From sequence record MT799840.1: a DNA stretch of 64,000 bases; one strand, given 5' to 3'. Shown one piece after another: positions 1-20,029 of the stretch. The position numbers and the translations under genes are program-made. Position 1 is the first letter of the stretch. Each line of letters begins with the position of its first letter. Below the pieces are notes generated by a model. The model did not search any database. It saw only the letters and a program-made list of their open reading frames with translations, and had not been told where the DNA came from.

Positions 1-351
1 TATTAAGATCTTAAAACGCGTGCGGGCGCGCGCGTGATCCTTATTAAGAGATCGTGATCGGACGGAAGACCGAGATCGGGTACCCTGTGTATTTTTTACG
101 TGGTTTCCCTATCGTGTGTTCAGACCACCACTCGATGTCCAAAAACCCATAGCTTCGGTGGTCGCCTCCCTGGTCGGTAGACTCTGACAAGTCGACCCAC
201 AACACCAACCCGTCCGGGGACGGATTTTTATTCCAACGACAAGCTCCACGAAAATCCCCGCAGAGGGACTCACTGCTGTGTGACTCACCGGCTCCTGGAC
301 GCCTACGCCTCGAGCCGGTAATTTTTTGATTACGTGAGTTTGTTGTTATAT

Positions 352-935
352 GCGAATAGCGATTGACCGCGCCAATGGTCCAATCACTTTTAAACCCTGC
401 ACGCTAGGGCTCCAAGTCCTGGGATTGTTACCCAGGACGCTTTTTCGAAAATACCTGCCGTGGTGTCTTCGACAAAGCGCAATCTAACACTGCGTGATTT
501 ATTATGTTCTGGAAAACTTTCGCCGTGGAACAGAACCGGTGAGCGTCGGCGGGGAATCCGACAATCACCACCCATTCAGGTACTCGGTAGATAACCGACC
601 TGCCGACGGTGCTACGTCGGGCGTAGTTCGGTTTGCGAGAGTGTCGAGAAAGTCGACTGCGCACCCATGACAAAATCCGAGTTGACCGTGGCAGCGCCAG
701 AGGACTGGGCAGCGGAGAGACGTCGTTGAACTTACCTCCGATAGTTATCGCTGATTCCGCTCTGGCGTCGGGCCAAAACTGATTCGAATTCGGCGTTGCG
801 TCGAAAAGGGGTCTGCGTGTAGAACCGCAGACTTGGGGGATAACTCCAAAGTGGGGTGATCGGATCTTGACGGCTCGGAACAGACGAGAGGGGTGGGTAC
901 TCCCGTTGTGAAACGCCAGTACCTGGCTGATTAAA
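352..935 (+). ncRNA. Candidate large structured non-coding RNA (block A)
   Basis: No convincing ORF. At least 8 stems read by eye (416-423/431-438, 506-511/531-536, 538-542/565-569, 577-581/598-602, 695-702/760-767, 811-817/826-832, long-range 468-483/795-805). Preceded by TATG at 349-352. Confidence 0.45.
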
Positions 936-984
936 ATTTACAGATTCTGCGTGAGGTATGATAAACCAAACGGAGAATTAAATC

Positions 985-1560
985 ATGAACTTGTATCGCA
1001 TCGGGTTTTACCGGAACGAGGTACCAGAATCGGTTTTGGTTGTCTTAGCCGAAAACGAGGAGCATGCCAAATCCTTCTGGCCGGTTAGCGCAGAGCGTCC
1101 AGCGGTTGCGTGCTGCTACGACGGTCCAGTTGCCGCAACGGATGTCGCTGCAGGCGTAGTCCTGAAGATGGGCCGATGGGAAGATTACTCCCATCCCGGT
1201 TTGGAGTTTGTTTCCGAACCTGCCAGACATTCCTGGGAATTTCCCTCAGGCAACACCGAGACGTATTTCGGATTTCAGGTTAAACAACCTTCGACGCTCA
1301 AACTGTACCTGGTGTACAGCGACGCCGCTACCGAAGACTACGTCGATTCCGGAATCATCGTCGGGGCAACAACCCCTGCTGCGGCATTCGCACATTGGGA
1401 CGGTGATAAACCCGGAATCGTTTCGGTCTGTGAGCTACCACTTGAAGCCGGTTTGGTTACGAACATCAAGTGTGAGCAAGGCCAGGAGCTGACTTGGATC
1501 CGCCAGGATTACCTGACGGAAACGACATTCGAGTACACACCGAGGAAGGTGACCCAATGA
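985..1560 (+). CDS. Hypothetical protein with two tandem copies of a small phage domain
   Basis: 191-aa ORF with GGAG RBS. Halves begin MNLYRIGF..VLVVLAENEEHA and LKLYLVYS..SGIIVGATTPAAA. Confidence 0.75.
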   Translation: MNLYRIGFYRNEVPESVLVVLAENEEHAKSFWPVSAERPAVACCYDGPVAATDVAAGVVLKMGRWEDYSHPGLEFVSEPARHSWEFPSGNTETYFGFQVKQPSTLKLYLVYSDAATEDYVDSGIIVGATTPAAAFAHWDGDKPGIVSVCELPLEAGLVTNIKCEQGQELTWIRQDYLTETTFEYTPRKVTQ

Positions 1561-2048
1561 CGACGATAGCGTTCGACGGAAAAGTCTTAGCTGCTGACGG
1601 CCAGTTAACCCGTGGGTCGAATATCTGCAACCTGAATACCCAGAAGTTATTCGTCTGTCCTCCTGACGAGGAATGGTGGATTACTGGTGAACGGATTGTG
1701 GCGTTCGGAGTAAGTGGTGATATCACAGGACAGTTGGCCCTGCTGGAAACTGTCCGCTTGAGACCCGGCTACAAGGGGTTAACGCAAAGCTCGCAGTTAC
1801 CTGCGAAGATGGATTTTACTTTCCTGATGCTTCTGGCCTCAGGGAAAGCGATAGTCGGTGGGAAGCGTGAAGACGACGTGTCGTTGTGGTGGAGTGAAGC
1901 CACACCACCTCTGGCAACCGGAAGCGGTTACGAGTACGCGTTGGGTGCGATGAAGATGGGCGCGAATGCGGTTCGTGCTGTTGAGATTGCGTCCGAATGC
2001 GATATCTACACCGGTGGTGAGATTAGCACTTACGAACTACGGAGGTGA
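1557..2048 (+). CDS. HslV/proteasome-beta-like Ntn hydrolase
   Basis: True start is ATG 1557 (ATGA overlap, GAGGAAGG RBS), giving MTTIAFDGKVLAAD. Also TGSGYEYALGAM and DIYTGG motifs typical of the N-terminal Thr protease fold. Confidence 0.75.
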   Translation: MTTIAFDGKVLAADGQLTRGSNICNLNTQKLFVCPPDEEWWITGERIVAFGVSGDITGQLALLETVRLRPGYKGLTQSSQLPAKMDFTFLMLLASGKAIVGGKREDDVSLWWSEATPPLATGSGYEYALGAMKMGANAVRAVEIASECDIYTGGEISTYELRR

Positions 2049-2051
2049 ATC

Positions 2052-2102
2052 ATGCGGGAGTCAGAAGCACGCAAGCTTGACCCCATCAATCGCCTGCGAT
2101 AA
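2052..2102 (+). CDS. Possible 16-aa micropeptide MRESEARKLDPINRLR
   Basis: Strong SD GGAGGTG at 2041-2047, ATG 2052, TAA 2100-2102. Alternatively the segment is a structured RNA leader. Confidence 0.3.
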   Translation: MRESEARKLDPINRLR

Positions 2103-2141
2103 CGGGGTAGCGCATCCGTATAAACACGTTTAAAGAATTCT

Positions 2142-2217
2142 GGGGGTATGGCGCAATTGGTAGCGCACCGGTCTCCAAAACCGAAGGTTCGAGGTTCGAA
2201 ACCTCGTGCCCCCGCCA
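2142..2217 (+). tRNA. trnW: tRNA-Trp (CCA)
   Basis: Full cloverleaf: acceptor GGGGGTA/TGCCCCC, anticodon loop CTCCAAA, GGTTCGAAACC T-arm, encoded 3' CCA. Confidence 0.95.
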
Positions 2218-2281
2218 CATTTAGCCAACGAATTCAGGTTCAACACAGAAGACACAGATTTGTCAACTGTTGGAGAACAAC

Positions 2282-2524
2282 ATGAATTTGTACTTGCTAG
2301 AACGAACTGACGATATCGGGTATGATGAATTTGATTCCATAATCGTGGCGGCTCCTACGGAGCAAGCCGCGTGTGCAATTCCTCCCGACCGTGGTCATTG
2401 GATGGACTGCCGCTGGTTACCGAAAGAGCGCTGGGATGAAGGGCTTACCCTGACCGTTACTCTTATCGGTACTACGCACTATCCTGCTGGGACCGTCGTT
2501 CATGAATCGTTCAATGCTGGCTAA
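2282..2524 (+). CDS. Small hypothetical protein, same domain family as 985-1560
   Basis: GGAG RBS at 2272-2275. Sequence MNLYLLERTDDIGYDEFDSIIVAAPTEQAA. Confidence 0.75.
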   Translation: MNLYLLERTDDIGYDEFDSIIVAAPTEQAACAIPPDRGHWMDCRWLPKERWDEGLTLTVTLIGTTHYPAGTVVHESFNAG

Positions 2525-2526
2525 AC

Positions 2527-2544
2527 AGTGGGCTTCGGCCCACT
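2527..2544 (+). terminator. UUCG stem-loop after CDS (no U-tract)
   Basis: AGTGGGC-TTCG-GCCCACT. Confidence 0.45.
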
Positions 2545-2731
2545 AACCCTATTCGAGCCGTGATACTTACTCAGATTGTGCGGGTTGATGTCCCGCATGA
2601 GCCGGTAGTAGCTTAGACCTACGGTAGACCAATAAATCCGTAGCAGCCAGGTACACAAAGCACCAGGTCGCTTGTACAGGATGCTGGGTATCTGACCGGT
2701 CATAACCTCATTCGATACGAGACACGTTTAT

Positions 2732-3299
2732 GCATGAAATACTCCAGTACATCAGGATGTTGATTTCCAACATCCGGTTCTGGGTATTCAGTCATGTTTG
2801 GTTTACAGGCGATGGGTTTTCCCGCAAGGGCCCCACTTACAGACTGGCGTCTCCACGACAACCGTCCCTAGGGGACAGGCAAGCACCGGCCCATTAAGCC
2901 GCTACGCTACGCCTGTAAATCCACAATTTGATAACCGAATGGGATTGAGTTCCCAGTGTTAGGGTGACTGTGTGTCACCGTAGGCGCGGTACCTCATACG
3001 GCCGGTACGCCACGAATGTACGTGATAGCGGGTGGTGCTTGGAGGCGCTAAGACCTGACCTTGCGGCCAGGCTCAGAAGAAGAAGTCCATCACCTGCATT
3101 CAGGAATGAATTTAGGTTAATTATTGGAAGTGGCGAAATCACTTACGTGATAACTTAGTAGTATGCAACGAACAATACCAGAGTGACTTTACGAGGTTAC
3201 TGTGGTATATGTCGGTGCGCCGGGCAACGTGTTGCCGCAGATAGGCCCGAGGGAGCTGAGTGCATTAACACACGCCGGGATGCACCGGCACCTTACAAT
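2732..3299 (+). ncRNA. Candidate structured non-coding RNA(s) (block B)
   Basis: Stems 2755-2762/2768-2775, 2802-2811/2910-2919, 2864-2868/2872-2876, 2940-2944/2951-2955, 2963-2968/2974-2979, 3028-3037/3088-3097. GNRA loops (GCAA, GGAA). TATG at 2729-2732. Confidence 0.45.
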
Positions 3300-3300
3300 G

Positions 3301-3367
3301 GCTTTGTAGCTCAGGTAGGTAGAGCAGCCTCTTTGAGGAAGGTCGCCGGTTCGAGACCGGTCAAAGC
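3301..3367 (+). pseudogene. tRNA-like element with collapsed anticodon arm
   Basis: Canonical D-arm (GCTC..GAGC), T-arm (GCCGG TTCGAGA CCGGT) and a 6-bp acceptor. The anticodon arm is 13 nt with a 3-nt TTT loop, and no CCA is encoded. Confidence 0.7.
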
Positions 3368-3369
3368 AA

Positions 3370-3444
3370 GAGCAGCGAAGTTAGAGGAATTAACACCCGA
3401 CTCATAATCGGATATTTCGACGGTTCGAATCCGTCCGTTTGCTC
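3370..3444 (+). tRNA. Degenerate tRNA with CAT anticodon (Met or Ile2)
   Basis: Anticodon arm CCGA-CTCATAA-TCGG and T-arm GACGG-TTCGAAT-CCGTC. Acceptor stem has a bulge, position 8 is A, and no CCA follows directly. Confidence 0.6.
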
Positions 3445-3451
3445 GTCCCAT

Positions 3452-3785
3452 TTGTGTTATCCTTATCCCGAAGGCATTCGAAATAAGACGCGTATCCACA
3501 CACGGGTCAAGGGTAACACGAACCACTTCCGCGGTCACCGTGTCCATTGCCGCCTACCTGCATGGGCTGTCCTCCGACACGGTGACTTCGGGCCAACTTA
3601 CAGGCCAGGGCCGTTTGGGTTTTTCTTACGCATCCATCCAGAGCCACCTCGCGCCCTAGTCTGTATACCCCTTTTCTGTTCCTGGTTTGCCAACTAAATC
3701 AATTAAGCCTGGTGCGTTGCCCTGGGAACAGAAAAACTTATTCGGTTACACGCCGAACCCACCCACGAGGGATATGTCGTGGACT
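3452..3785 (+). ncRNA. Candidate structured non-coding RNA (block C)
   Basis: Stems 3454-3462/3511-3519, perfect 11-bp 3534-3544/3576-3586, perfect 11-bp 3672-3682/3725-3735, and 3763-3768/3777-3782. Confidence 0.4.
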
Positions 3786-3824
3786 ACCAATAGAAGCAGC
3801 AATAGTAGTAAGAAGGAAAGCAAC

Positions 3825-4646
3825 ATGTTTACAGTTAAACGTGTGATTGATGGTGACCGTATCATTACCGAACATGAAAAGGTTCGTATCGGTGACCGTA
3901 AGTCTCGTGTATTCCGCGAGGCATTAAAAATGCTCGAGAACGAGCGATTCGACATTGTTGTCGATGATGAAAAGTTAGCCCTTAATCCGGGGTTAAAACG
4001 CGTTGCCCCTGATGTGCCTGATCCGATTACAAAGCACCCGTCCGATTATTACAGTTGGGTGACTCGAATGCAAGAAGATCAAAAATCGGGTCATCTGTAT
4101 CTGAAACAGCTTTTCCCTAATCTTGTTATTCCCGACTTGGACGACATTGAGCTGTTTAACTGCAATGTGCGTGACTTTATCAGCTATGTGCTGGATGATA
4201 AAGGTAATGCTGTTCTGATACTGGAGACGGGTTCACGTATACCCGATGCTGTGGATAACATTTGTGGTGAAATCGTTGGTTACGGTACACCCCCAGAGAA
4301 ATTAGGTTGGTACAAACCGTCGCCTGATAGCGATATGGCGATTATTGTCTACACTCAGGAAGAACTGCAACAAGTCGAATTAGAGCCTGGTCCATCTATC
4401 GAGTTCACTGATGTCCAGGAACACTCACAATGGGTTAATGGTGAATGCGTTGTTACTGTTTTAAAAGGCGCTCGCCCTGGCGACCGGTCAGTCGATGAAC
4501 TGATTGGCGCAATGTGCATCGAAGAAGAATCTGGATACGATCCTGATAACCAGATCAGTGCCGGTGCGTTGTACGAACTGTTTTATAAAGGCGACGAAGT
4601 CTACGTGGTTAACTCTCACGGTAAGACTACCGACGCCCTTCGCTGA
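3825..4646 (+). CDS. Hypothetical protein
   Basis: Start reassigned to ATG 3825 (AAGGAAAG RBS; MFTVKRVIDG). The upstream in-frame extension overlaps the structured block. Confidence 0.8.
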   Translation: MFTVKRVIDGDRIITEHEKVRIGDRKSRVFREALKMLENERFDIVVDDEKLALNPGLKRVAPDVPDPITKHPSDYYSWVTRMQEDQKSGHLYLKQLFPNLVIPDLDDIELFNCNVRDFISYVLDDKGNAVLILETGSRIPDAVDNICGEIVGYGTPPEKLGWYKPSPDSDMAIIVYTQEELQQVELEPGPSIEFTDVQEHSQWVNGECVVTVLKGARPGDRSVDELIGAMCIEEESGYDPDNQISAGALYELFYKGDEVYVVNSHGKTTDALR

Positions 4647-4736
4647 ATTAGCTAACGCCCAGTAGCTATGTTCCTGACGATTAGCCCTCGTCTGACCTTG
4701 TAAGACCTTGTAGATTTACATGCCAACACCAGGGAA

Positions 4737-4778
4737 GTCCTCACTCTTCGGAGTGAGGACAACTCTTTTATTTTTTTT
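4737..4778 (+). terminator. Rho-independent terminator
   Basis: GTCCTCACTC-TTCG-GAGTGAGGAC followed by a T-rich tract. Confidence 0.8.
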
Positions 4779-4794
4779 GTATTCCAAATATACA

Positions 4795-4810
4795 CAGATA
4801 GATATTACCT
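4795..4810 (+). promoter_or_regulatory. Putative early (virion RNAP) promoter
   Basis: CAGATAGATATTACCT. The motif recurs 8 times in the window and resembles the phiKZ early promoter core TATATTAC. Confidence 0.65.
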
Positions 4811-4869
4811 AAGTGAGATGAGAAAGCCTCATCTGAATTCTCCCAACTCGACTATAAAAGGTATGCATC

Positions 4870-5817
4870 ATGTACAGACCAAGTAATCCTAGCGCTATTG
4901 AAGGATTAAACCAGGATGGCTTCAGCCTCGCAGAAGCAACCCGCATTCGACCTTTCTTACCTCGCAGATTCTTCCCTTTCGGTTCGTTATACAGAACGAA
5001 CTTCGACGCTTGGGAAGCGATACGTGCTGTAAAAGATGCACTACAGTACAAGAACTTCGAATTCCGATTTGTGTTCAAATGGGGCAACGGCGAATTGCTC
5101 CATCATTTTGGATTCCAACAGAATGAGTTCATTGAGTACACCTCACCTACGTACCACACCAAGTTCCTAAGCATTGAGTTTGTTCGCCACTTCGGCGATG
5201 CACTTTTTACGGAACGTGCGGCAGATGAAAACCATGGACGTAGGCTGGTGTTAACGAACGGTGCATTACGCATCAAGATGAATCGTTTACGGGAAGCGTA
5301 TAACCAGCTCATCAATCCTGAACCGGTAATGTTTCCAACAGTCGCAGATTTGAACGTTACACCACTCCAGCTACCTGTGGATATAGACAAACCAATCCTG
5401 GCAATCAGAGCACTGCAGGCAGGTTACGCAAACTGGTATAAAGGGCACAGTCTCCCGAACACCAGATTGAACATCGAACCGTATGAGTTGTGTTTATTCT
5501 TAACTCTACGCAAGCGGTTTGAGCCGAATAACTTAGACTTGCGTTATTTAGCGACTCCTGATGTTGGAACCTATTATCCTGCGAATTGGATGGTTGCGGC
5601 AGTCCTACCGGACGGCGAGATGGTCGGTAGCATCGTTTATGGGACTCAACAGTTACCTTCTCCGTTAGCACCACCGAAGGATTCTATATATCCGTACGCT
5701 TCCTGGTACGTTGGCAGTAACGGAGCTAGATGGTTGGTACTCCACGTCCCTGCGGAAGTTTATAATTTGTTTCCACGTGAGCAATGGCTTAGCGTGTACG
5801 ATTTTCAGTTTGGTTAG
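4870..5817 (+). CDS. Hypothetical protein (early)
   Basis: 315-aa ORF between an early promoter motif and a terminator. Confidence 0.8.
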   Translation: MYRPSNPSAIEGLNQDGFSLAEATRIRPFLPRRFFPFGSLYRTNFDAWEAIRAVKDALQYKNFEFRFVFKWGNGELLHHFGFQQNEFIEYTSPTYHTKFLSIEFVRHFGDALFTERAADENHGRRLVLTNGALRIKMNRLREAYNQLINPEPVMFPTVADLNVTPLQLPVDIDKPILAIRALQAGYANWYKGHSLPNTRLNIEPYELCLFLTLRKRFEPNNLDLRYLATPDVGTYYPANWMVAAVLPDGEMVGSIVYGTQQLPSPLAPPKDSIYPYASWYVGSNGARWLVLHVPAEVYNLFPREQWLSVYDFQFG

Positions 5818-18077: not shown

Positions 18078-20029
18078 GTGAGAAAGGTACCAAAATTCTA
18101 CGGAATATCCGGCCGGTTGGTTAGTCAGGATAACTATTTGTCCGATTTGCAAATAGAAGCTGCTGCCAAAGGTATTAAACCACCCACTATTATTAACGAT
18201 GTCGCCGTTAACGGGGATGCGATCGAGGTTGCTGAACTTATCGATCGCATGGTACAGAACAGAATCGTTGACGAAGAACTGAACTCTGCACCGATTTGTA
18301 GTTTGGATTGTCCGGCACCGATCGCGCATCGTTACAATCTCGGTTGTAAGTGTCCGACGTGTGGCTATGTTGTAACTGAACATCGAATTGAATCCGATGT
18401 CTGGTTACGTGCACCCGATGAAATGGGTAACTTCGTCAACCCACGATTCTGGGCAATGTTCAATGCTTTCTTTAATAGCAAGTTGAAGAAGTTTGAACGT
18501 AACAAGGTCACTATCGAACGCGGTAATGACTTGATGATGTGGATGATTGACCCGTATTACCGTATAGAAGAACCAGACGGTAAACGCGCACATGCTGTGA
18601 AACGTGTATTGGAAGAACATGGTTTCGTTCGTGGCTTGCGCAATCTGGTTGATAACCACGTTAGTATCTTTAACATCCTTACCACGCCAGAAGCCTGGAA
18701 GGAAATCTTCGCACCTAATCGGCATAACGCCGCTGAAGGTGAACGCTTACGTTTACAATGGAAGGAGCTATTCGAAACGCAACGTCACGCATTCTTCCCA
18801 AGACACTTACCGCTAATCTCCTCTAAACTTATCGTTACTGAGGAAGGTCGTCGTGGTGTCATGGTAGACCCAGTGTTCACGGGTGCTATTGACGCGGTGA
18901 AAAATATCGCGTTGCTCTATACGCGGCGTAAAGCGATCGAACCACGTTTTCTGATTAGTCGTGCTTTGAAAGCGAACCGTCAGTTAACGTACTTCCACAT
19001 GGACTTCCGTCGTGAGTCTATGGAAGGTAAACCGGGTGACTATCGCGCGAAATTGGGTTCCACCCATATTCCGTTCGGTGGTCGTGCAACCATCTCACCT
19101 ATCTCAGAACCACACGATGCCTGGAAGTTAAAAGCACCATGGCGTTGGATGGTTGGGTTGATGTCGACCCACATCGAGAACAAACTGCTACGACGGGGTT
19201 ATTCGTCACGGCAGTGTGAACGTATCGTTGCAAAAGCGGCAATGCAGTATGACCCGCTTGTAGATGAAATCTTTAAAGAGCTAATTCGTGAATCCCCAGG
19301 CGGTCTTGGGATCATGGTCATACCGCTACGTAACCCAACGCTGGTACAGTTGTCTATTCAGACGCTGTTCATCGACGAAGTTGTTACCGATGTTAACCAG
19401 TGTTCGCTGCGTATCTCTGACCGTGTGATCAAGATGGCTAACGGTTCGAAAAGAGCCCCATCGGACGGGAAACCTCTGATGCGTATTCTCCTGAAATGCT
19501 GGGAAACCCTAAAGCGTGTCTACCAGAAATGGGGACGAAAGTCTGAAACAACAGATACGATGGCCTACGCTAAACAATACTGCTAACGGTTGTGATAATG
19601 GGTAATCAGCAGCGAAGCCTCGTGAGAGGAACGTTCAACGACTATCGCTGAAATGCGAGTAGGGGTCCCAGTGGACTTCGAAGTGGGAGAACACCTAAGG
19701 CGATAGCTATGGTGAAGATATAGTCTGTGCCTTATCGAGAGATAAGGAGGGTGTCTTAGCACACCTGCTGTATACGGAAACGGTATACGGTGGACAAACA
19801 GGATTTCGATGGCGACCAGTTCCAGGTACGTTTGCCAGTCGATGAAACTGAGATGAAGTTGGCGCTCCAATTCCGTCCAGATAACGGCTTTATGTCTTCT
19901 ACTGATGTGGACCGCGTAGAACACGGCATGGTTTTACATAACGAGCTAATCAGTATGCAGAACCAGTTCCTTATTGAAGCAGATGAGGATGATGAAGAAG
20001 GCATTCCGTTGGAAGCGGTGATGGGCTAA
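18078..20029 (+). CDS. Non-virion RNAP beta-prime N-terminal subunit (phiKZ gp55-like), two exons 18078-19445 + 19802-20029, ~531 aa
   Basis: Zn-ribbon CSLDC..CKCPTC, MEGKPGDYRAKLG, GGRATISP and LRNPTL motifs. Splicing restores the catalytic NGDFDGD. Confidence 0.9.
19446..19801 (+). mobile_element. Group I self-splicing intron, ORF-less (356 nt)
   Basis: P AAATGCTGGGAAA 19494, Q AATCAGCAG 19604, R GTTCAACGACTA 19633, S AAGATATAGTC 19715. P1 hairpin has the U.G pair at the 5' splice site (U19445.G19455). Terminal G19801. Confidence 0.93.

Follow-up and report, generated by a model that had tools for sequence, protein, structure and literature searches.

Evidence for a conserved structured RNA with an embedded small gene beside the tRNA array of SPN3US-like and related jumbo phages

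The DNA analysed here (the window, 64,000 nucleotides) comes from Salmonella phage JN03 (MT799840.1), of which it forms the first 64 kb, with 100% identity over 12 kb; JN03 is a Seoulvirus near SPN3US and one of the SPN3US-like nucleus-forming jumbo phages. Its + strand carries a conserved unit of ~525 nucleotides (nt; 2579-3101) that is composed of three parts: a structured 5' domain (2579-2699), a small open reading frame (ORF; 2730-2897) and a structured 3' domain (2864-3101). It is highly probable that this unit is a conserved structured RNA with an embedded coding ORF, and we rate it as a new large-RNA family of phages, unusual in containing a probably translated ORF whose codons double as conserved hairpins. 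A preliminary description of the same DNA had presented 2729-3299 as a block of structured non-coding RNA running into tRNA-like elements. This interval contains the larger part of the unit, and the 5' domain lies outside it. Covariation and comparison with relatives bear out a conserved, multi-domain structured RNA on the + strand that leads into a tRNA or tRNA-like array; the term 'non-coding', however, has to be given up, because 2730-2897 is a conserved ORF that appears to be under purifying selection.

The unit is carried by 28 distinct loci, drawn from four phage genera as well as from IMG/VR and metagenomes, and occurs in SPN3US-like, Machina-, Erskine- and Wellington-type jumbo phages. 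A blastn search of 50,697 phage records with 2525-3299 returned 66 matching records and no match outside this clade. SPN3US-like genomes are >95% identical to the query, SPAsTU (79%) and Erwinia phage pEa_SNUABM_29 (76%) match it over nearly its full length, and Machinavirus, Erskinevirus and Wellingtonvirus share a common core, ~2864-3101, at 70-79%. The nucleotide searches yielded 25 distinct sequences, with a single copy per genome or locus. Five more loci, comprising three additional sequence types, were found through the protein alone, and the 3' hairpin is present in all five. Pattern scans added contigs from IMG/VR and metagenomes, all of the jumbo-phage type. Looser IMG/VR patterns, with 14-15 specified bases, gave 116 extra loci; these were treated as chance matches, because a covariance model of the 3' hairpin (R1) matched none of them significantly (E <= 0.01; two chance-level matches had E values of 0.46 and 0.8), and the family therefore appears confined to this clade. 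No match came from a conserved-motif scan of 185,579 bacterial and archaeal species, each represented by one genome, and no description of this RNA was found in the searchable literature. Across the four genera the unpaired motifs of the unit are near-identical, whereas the small protein is only 27-44% identical.

In the alignment of the 25 sequences, the 3' domain appears as a series of near-invariant single strands, among them CACAATCTGA, ATGGGATTGAGTTCCCAG, GGTGCTTGGAG and GAAGAAGAAGTCCATC, set between helices that carry compensatory changes (Table 1). The 3' hairpin, H7, is ~80 nt long and contains a purine-rich internal loop (GGAGGCG / AAGAAG). In this hairpin 95.3% of the alignment cells are paired, compared with 34-46% when the partners are slid; 11/26 pairs are compensatory, and 0/500 shuffles reach the observed covariation score. 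Moreover, a G-U pair kept in 21/22 rows fixes the + strand. The R1 model finds one copy of the hairpin in the 64-kb window, with a score of 91.7 bits. The helix 3028-3037/3088-3097 had been taken in the preliminary description to close a three-way junction; it belongs instead to a single long hairpin, which has an internal loop but does not branch.

The 190 nt upstream of the ATG, which had earlier been called block B, are conserved in all lineages, and the unit therefore consists of the 5' domain, the ORF and the 3' domain. That block B forms part of the same unit fits the earlier suggestion of one large RNA or a processed operon. For hairpins Ha, Hb, Hc and Hd taken together, 90.2% of cells are paired (35-45% with slid partners), 16/23 tested pairs are compensatory and the covariation score is 0.589 versus about 0.09. 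The GGG...CCC core of Ha is invariant in 22 distinct loci, and its three outer pairs show compensatory changes. The helix that closes the multi-branch region covaries by eye (CCGGT/ACCGG, ACGGT/ACCGT, GACGGA/TCCGTC) and was left out of the covariation count because its alignment register shifts. Folding energy alone fails to choose the strand, because the minus strand of 2729-3299 beats all shuffles (z = -4.0) as the + strand does (better than 100/100 dinucleotide shuffles, z = -3.74); it is the kept G-U pairs, in the 5' domain as well as in the 3' hairpin, that fix the + strand.

An intact counterpart of the small ORF, of 55-69 amino acids (aa), is present in every locus, and all of them end at the same TAA. 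The TATG at 2729-2732, from which the earlier block was counted, is the context of the start codon. The frame is open in 21/21 distinct nucleotide versions, whereas stops occur in all of the other five frames, whichever version is taken, and within groups the ratio of non-synonymous to synonymous substitution rates (dN/dS) is 0.19-0.68. Alignment with SPAsTU and pEa_SNUABM_29 reveals codon-like substitution from 2730 on, and JN03 and SPAsTU differ by seven synonymous codon changes within the first 24 codons, one of which is CGG -> AGA. All versions of the ORF match phrog_26199, a family of unknown function, and residues W18, G27, R32, A52 and P53 of the product are invariant. The AlphaFold2 (AF2) model predicts a helix at residues 2-26 (predicted local distance difference test score, pLDDT, 83-90) and a disordered tail at residues 29-55. 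In most lineages this N-terminal helix is charged and amphipathic, and not like a membrane span. The small protein has no counterpart in Pfam or the protein atlas, and only 8 relatives are contained in a large protein database, every one of them belonging to this phage clade. As judged from these patterns of sequence change, the small ORF is a real gene under purifying selection.

This gene of 55-69 aa has been overlooked in the annotation of both JN03 and SPN3US. The JN03 record leaves 2049-3773 without any annotation, and among the listed JN03 ORFs no long one falls between 2525 and about 3774-3826. The counterpart of 2525-3299 is blank in the SPN3US RefSeq record, which annotates only a small coding sequence (CDS) upstream of the unit and labels the counterpart of 3300-3369 'tRNA-OTHER'.

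The ORF and the RNA structure share nucleotides, which encode the protein tail and form conserved RNA hairpins at the same time, an unusual overlap of codes. The RNA constraints coincide with the tail of the ORF, and H1-H3 overlap its last 11 codons. The hairpin with a GCAA loop was rightly singled out before: it is kept in 22/24 distinct ORFs in identical codon phase, with GCAA, GTAA, GTGA or GAGA as its loop, and the changes in its stem are compensatory (CCC/GGG, CTC/GAG, AGGAC/GTCCT, AGGGC/GCCCT). The stop codon, TAA 2895-2897, forms the 3' end of the H3 loop and is invariant and in frame in all loci. In the L191/L193 lineage, which was found by way of the protein alone, the protein ends differently, in GPASDS before the stop, yet H2, H3 and the looped TAA are preserved, and the constraint at the end of the ORF is therefore on the RNA.

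Every helix named in the preliminary description can be read in the JN03 sequence at the position given for it, though not all are kept in relatives. The 8-bp hairpin inside the ORF and the GGAA hairpin at the base of H7 are judged to be lineage-specific. The former is found only in JN03 and SPN3US-like genomes, the same codons being unpaired in SPAsTU and pEa_SNUABM_29; the latter has a GGAA or GAAA loop in SPN3US-like phages, a weakened form in SPAsTU and a deletion in its place in pEa_SNUABM_29. The 10-bp helix 2802-2811/2910-2919 is also present, and its sequence is conserved in Seoul-, Machina-, Caitlin-type and L191 lineages and absent in the Erskine and Wellington types. It competes, however, with the covarying local helix H2, and its duplex energy beats codon-shuffled controls only in JN03; RNAalifold, run on a codon-aware joint alignment, gave no supported long-range pairing between ORF codons and the 3' domain. 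Two further pairings, of TCAGATTGTG (2571-2580) with CACAATTTGA (2922-2931) and of AAGCAC (2657-2662) with GTGCTT (3035-3040), were dropped as lacking covariation, and by-eye resemblances to the RNase P P4 helix, signal recognition particle (SRP) RNA, group II intron domain V, T-loops and the 16S rRNA 790 loop found no model match.

Covariation analysis had been proposed from the start as a check on the structure, and with compensatory changes in both the 5' domain and the 3' hairpin its outcome is positive. Conserved short ORFs combined with stems that are not conserved had been named as one finding that would speak against a structured RNA. The first half of this holds, as the ORF is conserved; the second does not, as the stems are conserved too.

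At gathering thresholds, a cmscan of the window against Rfam 15 identified only tRNAs and a group I intron. When 1-5000 was scanned at E <= 10, the only matches within 2525-3299 were at chance level (L17 leader, E = 8.5; CRISPR-DR56, E = 9.8). GOLLD and ROOL gave no match even at E <= 10, the group I intron and RNase P RNA models gave none at the locus at that threshold, and an Rfam scan of the loci of five relatives returned tRNA only. For transfer-messenger RNA (tmRNA), ARAGORN found none in the window and the Rfam models were silent; for tRNA, neither Rfam nor ARAGORN gave a match inside 2525-3299, the matches beginning at 3300. The group I intron was found at 19426-19747, and the Rfam method therefore works on this genome. 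The region thus matches no described family, as had been proposed, and the suggested relation to GOLLD-type RNAs is not borne out, there being no similarity to GOLLD, ROOL or any other Rfam family at E <= 10.

In all relatives the unit lies upstream of the tRNA array and on the same strand. The relatives have 3-14 ordinary tRNAs at this position, and in Erskineviruses the first tRNA starts ~3-4 nt past the last helix. The two elements downstream of the unit in JN03, previously described as degenerate tRNAs, both exceed the Rfam tRNA gathering score of 29, but ARAGORN rejects them and accepts only tRNA-Trp, which Rfam places at 2142-2214. Block D, which precedes these elements, is highly conserved among JN03, SPAsTU and pEa_SNUABM_29 and is absent from the other genera; 2/56 of its predicted pairs are compensatory, and its structure is plausible but has little support.

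The best explanation of the unit, which we hold with about even confidence, is a bifunctional molecule that would serve as an mRNA and as a folded-RNA scaffold and would be processed with the tRNA array. A single transcript, a dual-function RNA, would then be mRNA and folded RNA at once, and it would be made with the tRNAs and freed by host tRNA-processing enzymes; given the short distance between the last helix and the first tRNA in Erskineviruses, RNase P would make the 3' end there. Such co-transcription and processing, taken separately, is an evenly balanced proposition. The context favours the bifunctional reading: tRNA arrays lie downstream of the unit in all relatives, the + strand of 2525-4737 has neither a sigma-70-like promoter nor an intrinsic terminator-like site, and in phage phiKZ the tRNAs depend on the non-virion RNA polymerase (PMC12571901). 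A ribosome on the ORF would have to melt H1-H3 and would stop inside a loop, and translation and the fold of the 3' domain would in this way be linked. The unpaired stretches GAAGAAGAAGTCC, TTGGAG and CACAATCTGA are more conserved than the protein, and for this reason we propose that the folded RNA is most likely a binding platform for a conserved partner. The invariant single strands and the purine-rich loop would bind this partner, which could be the small basic protein itself or a factor, from the host or the phage, that belongs to tRNA or translation metabolism. A scaffold or ribonucleoprotein role is offered tentatively.

A number of observations weigh against the bifunctional reading. 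Taken by itself, the 3' domain folds no better than shuffled sequence (z = -0.77), and with a core that is unremarkable by energy the case must rest on comparison with relatives. Two of the hairpins, H3 and H4, hardly vary and so lie outside the test of covariation; H4, which never varies, provides no covariation evidence either way. Where coding and RNA structure overlap, as in this ORF, the dN/dS ratio is biased. In SPAsTU and in Machina-type phages the RNA is followed by an annotated CDS before the first tRNA is reached, so that the link to the tRNAs is positional, not obligatory. The promoter, the RNA ends and the processing are all inferred. Finally, the only sequencing runs that contain the sequence are wastewater or unlabelled libraries, whose contigs span genes and spacers alike and hence give no transcript evidence.

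A real ORF, preceded in most lineages by a small hairpin with a weak Shine-Dalgarno-like motif 8-14 nt before the ATG and encoding a basic, half-disordered protein, would also be expected of an ordinary small-protein gene. Its structured untranslated regions (UTRs) would then act only in cis, on translation rate or mRNA stability, for example by offering the small basic protein a binding site for autoregulation, in the manner of ribosomal-protein leaders. We regard this account as rather unlikely: a multi-domain RNA of ~360 nt, with unpaired motifs that outconserve the protein, exceeds what known operators need, and the conserved place before tRNA arrays is left unexplained.

The invariant position of the stop codon in a hairpin loop, together with the fact that all ORFs are open up to it despite the disordered tail, raises the alternative of a translation-gated riboregulator, in which an ORF leader ending in the H3 loop would switch the downstream fold and so control expression or processing of the tRNA array. 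The candidate switch is GCCTGT at 2911-2916, which pairs with either 2875-2880 or 2802-2811, and these mutually exclusive partners occur in the Seoul-, Machina-, Caitlin-type and L191 lineages. The long-range partner, however, is the one that beats codon shuffles only in JN03 and is missing from the Erskine and Wellington types; no terminator-like site follows, and some genomes have a CDS between the RNA and the tRNAs. Moreover, Chimalliviridae transcribe inside a protein shell, away from ribosomes, and classical, coupled attenuation is therefore unlikely. Overall, a riboregulator of this kind is improbable.

The reading of the preliminary description, a purely non-coding large RNA of the GOLLD/ROOL type with an incidental open frame, draws on the size of the RNA, its several domains, its phage origin, its place beside tRNAs and the presence of RNA hairpins inside the ORF. 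We give it little credence, since the ORF frame is the only one open in 21/21 versions, dN/dS within groups stays below 1, there are synonymous double changes, the product has a PHROG match and a confidently predicted helix, and GOLLD and ROOL are without a match at E <= 10. Still less probable is a cassette resembling type I toxin-antitoxin systems, with a small helical peptide on a folded mRNA (as in hok) that is silenced by structure or antisense RNA. Such a cassette would suit a highly structured mRNA whose peptide, ~55-69 aa long, has an N-terminal helix that is hydrophobic or amphipathic, but in most lineages the helix is charged and amphipathic, unlike a membrane span, no antisense promoter/terminator pattern was seen within 2525-3300, and the 3' domain is far larger than known cassettes. 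Decayed tRNA genes or a neutral spacer, left after the SPN3US lineage lost most tRNAs, might be suspected because JN03 retains tRNA-Trp and two degenerate tRNA-like elements where relatives have 3-14 tRNAs, but this is hardly credible, as the unit also shows compensatory changes in genomes with full tRNA arrays, no tRNA model matches within 2525-3299 at E <= 10, and the covariation already contradicts decay.

Among known systems, GOLLD and ROOL resemble the unit in being large, multi-domain, phage-encoded RNAs of unknown function that adjoin tRNA genes and were recognised by covariation. The JN03 unit differs from them in lacking an Rfam 15 match, in being limited to one clade of Enterobacterales jumbo phages and in having a conserved, probably translated ORF, which GOLLD and ROOL do not have. 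The phage T4 RNAs rnaC and rnaD (species 1 and 2) are ~120-140 nt long, lie in the tRNA cluster, have no ORF and no known function, and are released by tRNA-processing enzymes; like the unit they are phage RNAs beside or within a tRNA array, a likeness drawn by description, with processing in JN03 only inferred. The dual-function small RNAs RNAIII/hld of S. aureus, SgrS/SgrT and SR1/SR1P are chromosomal base-pairing regulators with known targets. They share with the unit a folded RNA and a small ORF embedded between structured domains, whereas in JN03 the ORF codons form conserved hairpins and the stop lies in a conserved loop. With tmRNA the unit has in common a structured RNA, an internal frame, a stop in a hairpin and a place near tRNA-like elements, but it has no tRNA-like domain formed from its two ends, and its ORF has its own ATG and 55-69 codons. 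The hok-type cassettes likewise have a peptide of ~50 aa on a heavily folded mRNA, with structure flanking the ORF on both sides; in JN03 there is no evident antisense partner, the peptide does not clearly form a membrane span, and the flanking domains are larger and contain invariant single strands.

Defined operationally, a dual-function RNA has a covariation-supported structure, an ORF under protein-level selection, and a transcript that is translated and has an activity apart from coding. The unit displays the first two: 11 + 16 compensatory pairs with slid-partner controls at 34-46%, and a frame open in 21/21 versions with dN/dS of 0.19-0.68 and a PHROG match. By analogy, it would act most like a dual-function RNA and be placed like GOLLD, ROOL or T4 rnaC/rnaD. 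More speculatively, and with considerable doubt on our part, the sequences would fit an undescribed class of ~525-nt ornate bifunctional RNAs of nucleus-forming jumbo phages, with a translated middle encoding a one-helix protein and a fold gated by the ribosome as it terminates in a hairpin loop; the RNA, with or without its own peptide, would be a particle acting on tRNA or translation metabolism during infection.

Table 1. Elements of the conserved unit and of the adjoining region in JN03 (window coordinates).
Feature	Position	Strand	Details
Ha hairpin	2579-2597	+	TGCGGG / 7-nt loop TTGATGT / CCCGCA
Multi-branch region	2602-2699	+	closing helix 2602-2606/2695-2699 around Hb, Hc, Hd
Hb	2619-2624/2638-2643	+	13-nt loop with ACC..TAA
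Hc	2648-2654/2688-2694	+	
Junction ACAAAGCA(C)	2654-2662	+	inside multi-branch region
Hd	2663-2666/2684-2687	+	
Small ORF, 55 aa	2730-2897	+	MHEILQYIRMLISNIRFWVFSHVWFTGDGF...DRQAPAH, then stop; unannotated in JN03 and SPN3US RefSeq
8-bp hairpin	2755-2775	+	GGATGTTG (2755-2762) / CAACATCC (2768-2775); ORF codons 9-16
10-bp long-range helix	2802-2811/2910-2919	+	TTTACAGGCG / CGCCTGTAAA; 10 Watson-Crick pairs
GNRA hairpin	2821-2830	+	CCC GCAA GGG; ORF codons S-R-K-G
H1	2864-2868/2872-2876	+	end of ORF / start of 3' domain
H2	2875-2880/2911-2916	+	ACAGGC/GCCTGT -> GAAGGT/ACCTTC, ATAGGT/GCCTGT between lineages
H3	2882-2884/2906-2908 plus 2887-2890/2898-2901	+	7-nt loop 2891-2897
Single-stranded linker CACAAT(C/T)TGA	2922-2931	+	nearly invariant, 25 sequences
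H4	2940-2955	+	GGGA TTGAGT TCCC; nearly invariant, 25 sequences
H5	2963-2968/2974-2979	+	3/5 pairs compensatory
H6 variable arm	about 2983-3011	+	length and sequence vary by lineage; self-complementarity stays (by eye, no formal count)
H7, 3' hairpin	3024-3101	+	outer helix 3024-3040/3083-3101, 2-nt TC bulge; inner helix 3048-3059/3066-3076
Helix within H7 outer helix	3028-3037/3088-3097	+	GCGGGTGGTG / CATCACCTGC; 10 pairs, 2 G-U
GGAA hairpin	3098-3111	+	ATTCA-GGAA-TGAAT; overlaps H7 base
Block D	3112-3299	+	predicted hairpins 3175-3208, 3211-3289; Seoulvirus-only extension
tRNA-like element 1	3300-3369	+	Rfam tRNA 37.1 bits; 3-nt 'anticodon loop'
tRNA-like element 2	3372-3443	+	Rfam tRNA 30.6 bits; CAT anticodon, mismatched acceptor stem

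Some further features of the region were recorded. H4 starts with ATG (TTG in locus L013), which opens a mini-frame, MGLSSQ..., at 2940-2963; its length varies (7 aa in JN03, longer in Wellington), and its conservation is probably due to the H4 hairpin and not to coding. A perfect hairpin, GTGGGC-TTCG-GCCCAC, lies at 2530-2545, 6 nt past the stop of an 84-aa ORF (2270-2524). It is kept in SPAsTU and pEa_SNUABM_29, has no T-run, and could either act on the preceding gene, as a terminator or stabiliser, or mark where the RNA unit begins on its 5' side.

The first tRNA-like element and its counterpart in Proteus phage 7 (L001, 1664-1734) have good acceptor, D and T arms and a loop of 3 nt (TTT in JN03, ATC in Proteus phage 7) in place of the 7-nt anticodon loop; as the loop is short in both genomes, the element may be no decoder, but for example a processing signal. 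Between block D and this element Proteus phage 7 has an extra stretch of 257 nt (1403-1659), to which no Rfam family matches. The stretch measures about 265-270 nt in the SPFM and SPLA (SPLA1a/5c) genomes and is absent from JN03 and SPN3US, and phage 1252 has a longer insertion. In Machina-type phages a CDS of 108-110 aa separates the RNA from tRNA-Tyr (L006, 1783-2109; L009, 1776-2108; L191-L194, about 1943-2272). This CDS is annotated as ParB-like in pSal-SNUABM-04 and Machina, and HNH endonuclease genes are found near in other lineages; the stretch that separates the RNA from the tRNAs appears to be an insertion hot spot. In wastewater runs X11, X13 and X3, contigs covering 3295-3450 break at the borders of the tRNA-like elements, and the loose ends carry other tRNA sequences, so that related wastewater phages differ there in the content of the tRNA array.

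Elsewhere in the window, positions 1-984 form a long stretch with no convincing ORF, in which GC-rich hairpins are followed by T-runs (16-36, 210-225, 416-438). This is presumably the first block of the preliminary description, and the R1 model found no copy of the 3' hairpin in it. The CDS annotated as RNA polymerase beta subunit 1 (18249-19586) runs at its 3' end into the group I intron at 19426-19747, a match to the full-length Rfam model with 68.6 bits. A self-splicing intron probably interrupts this gene, and the end annotated for the CDS may be wrong.

The region contains a non-protein feature that ranks among the most conserved in the clade. Little is known of the RNA biology of these phages, including how RNA leaves the phage nucleus, how tRNA precursors mature and whether regulatory RNAs are used at all. 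A covariation-supported RNA beside the tRNA array provides a concrete object to delete, probe and pull down, and, as SPN3US is a genetically tractable model of the nucleus-forming jumbo phages, the unit is a testable target.

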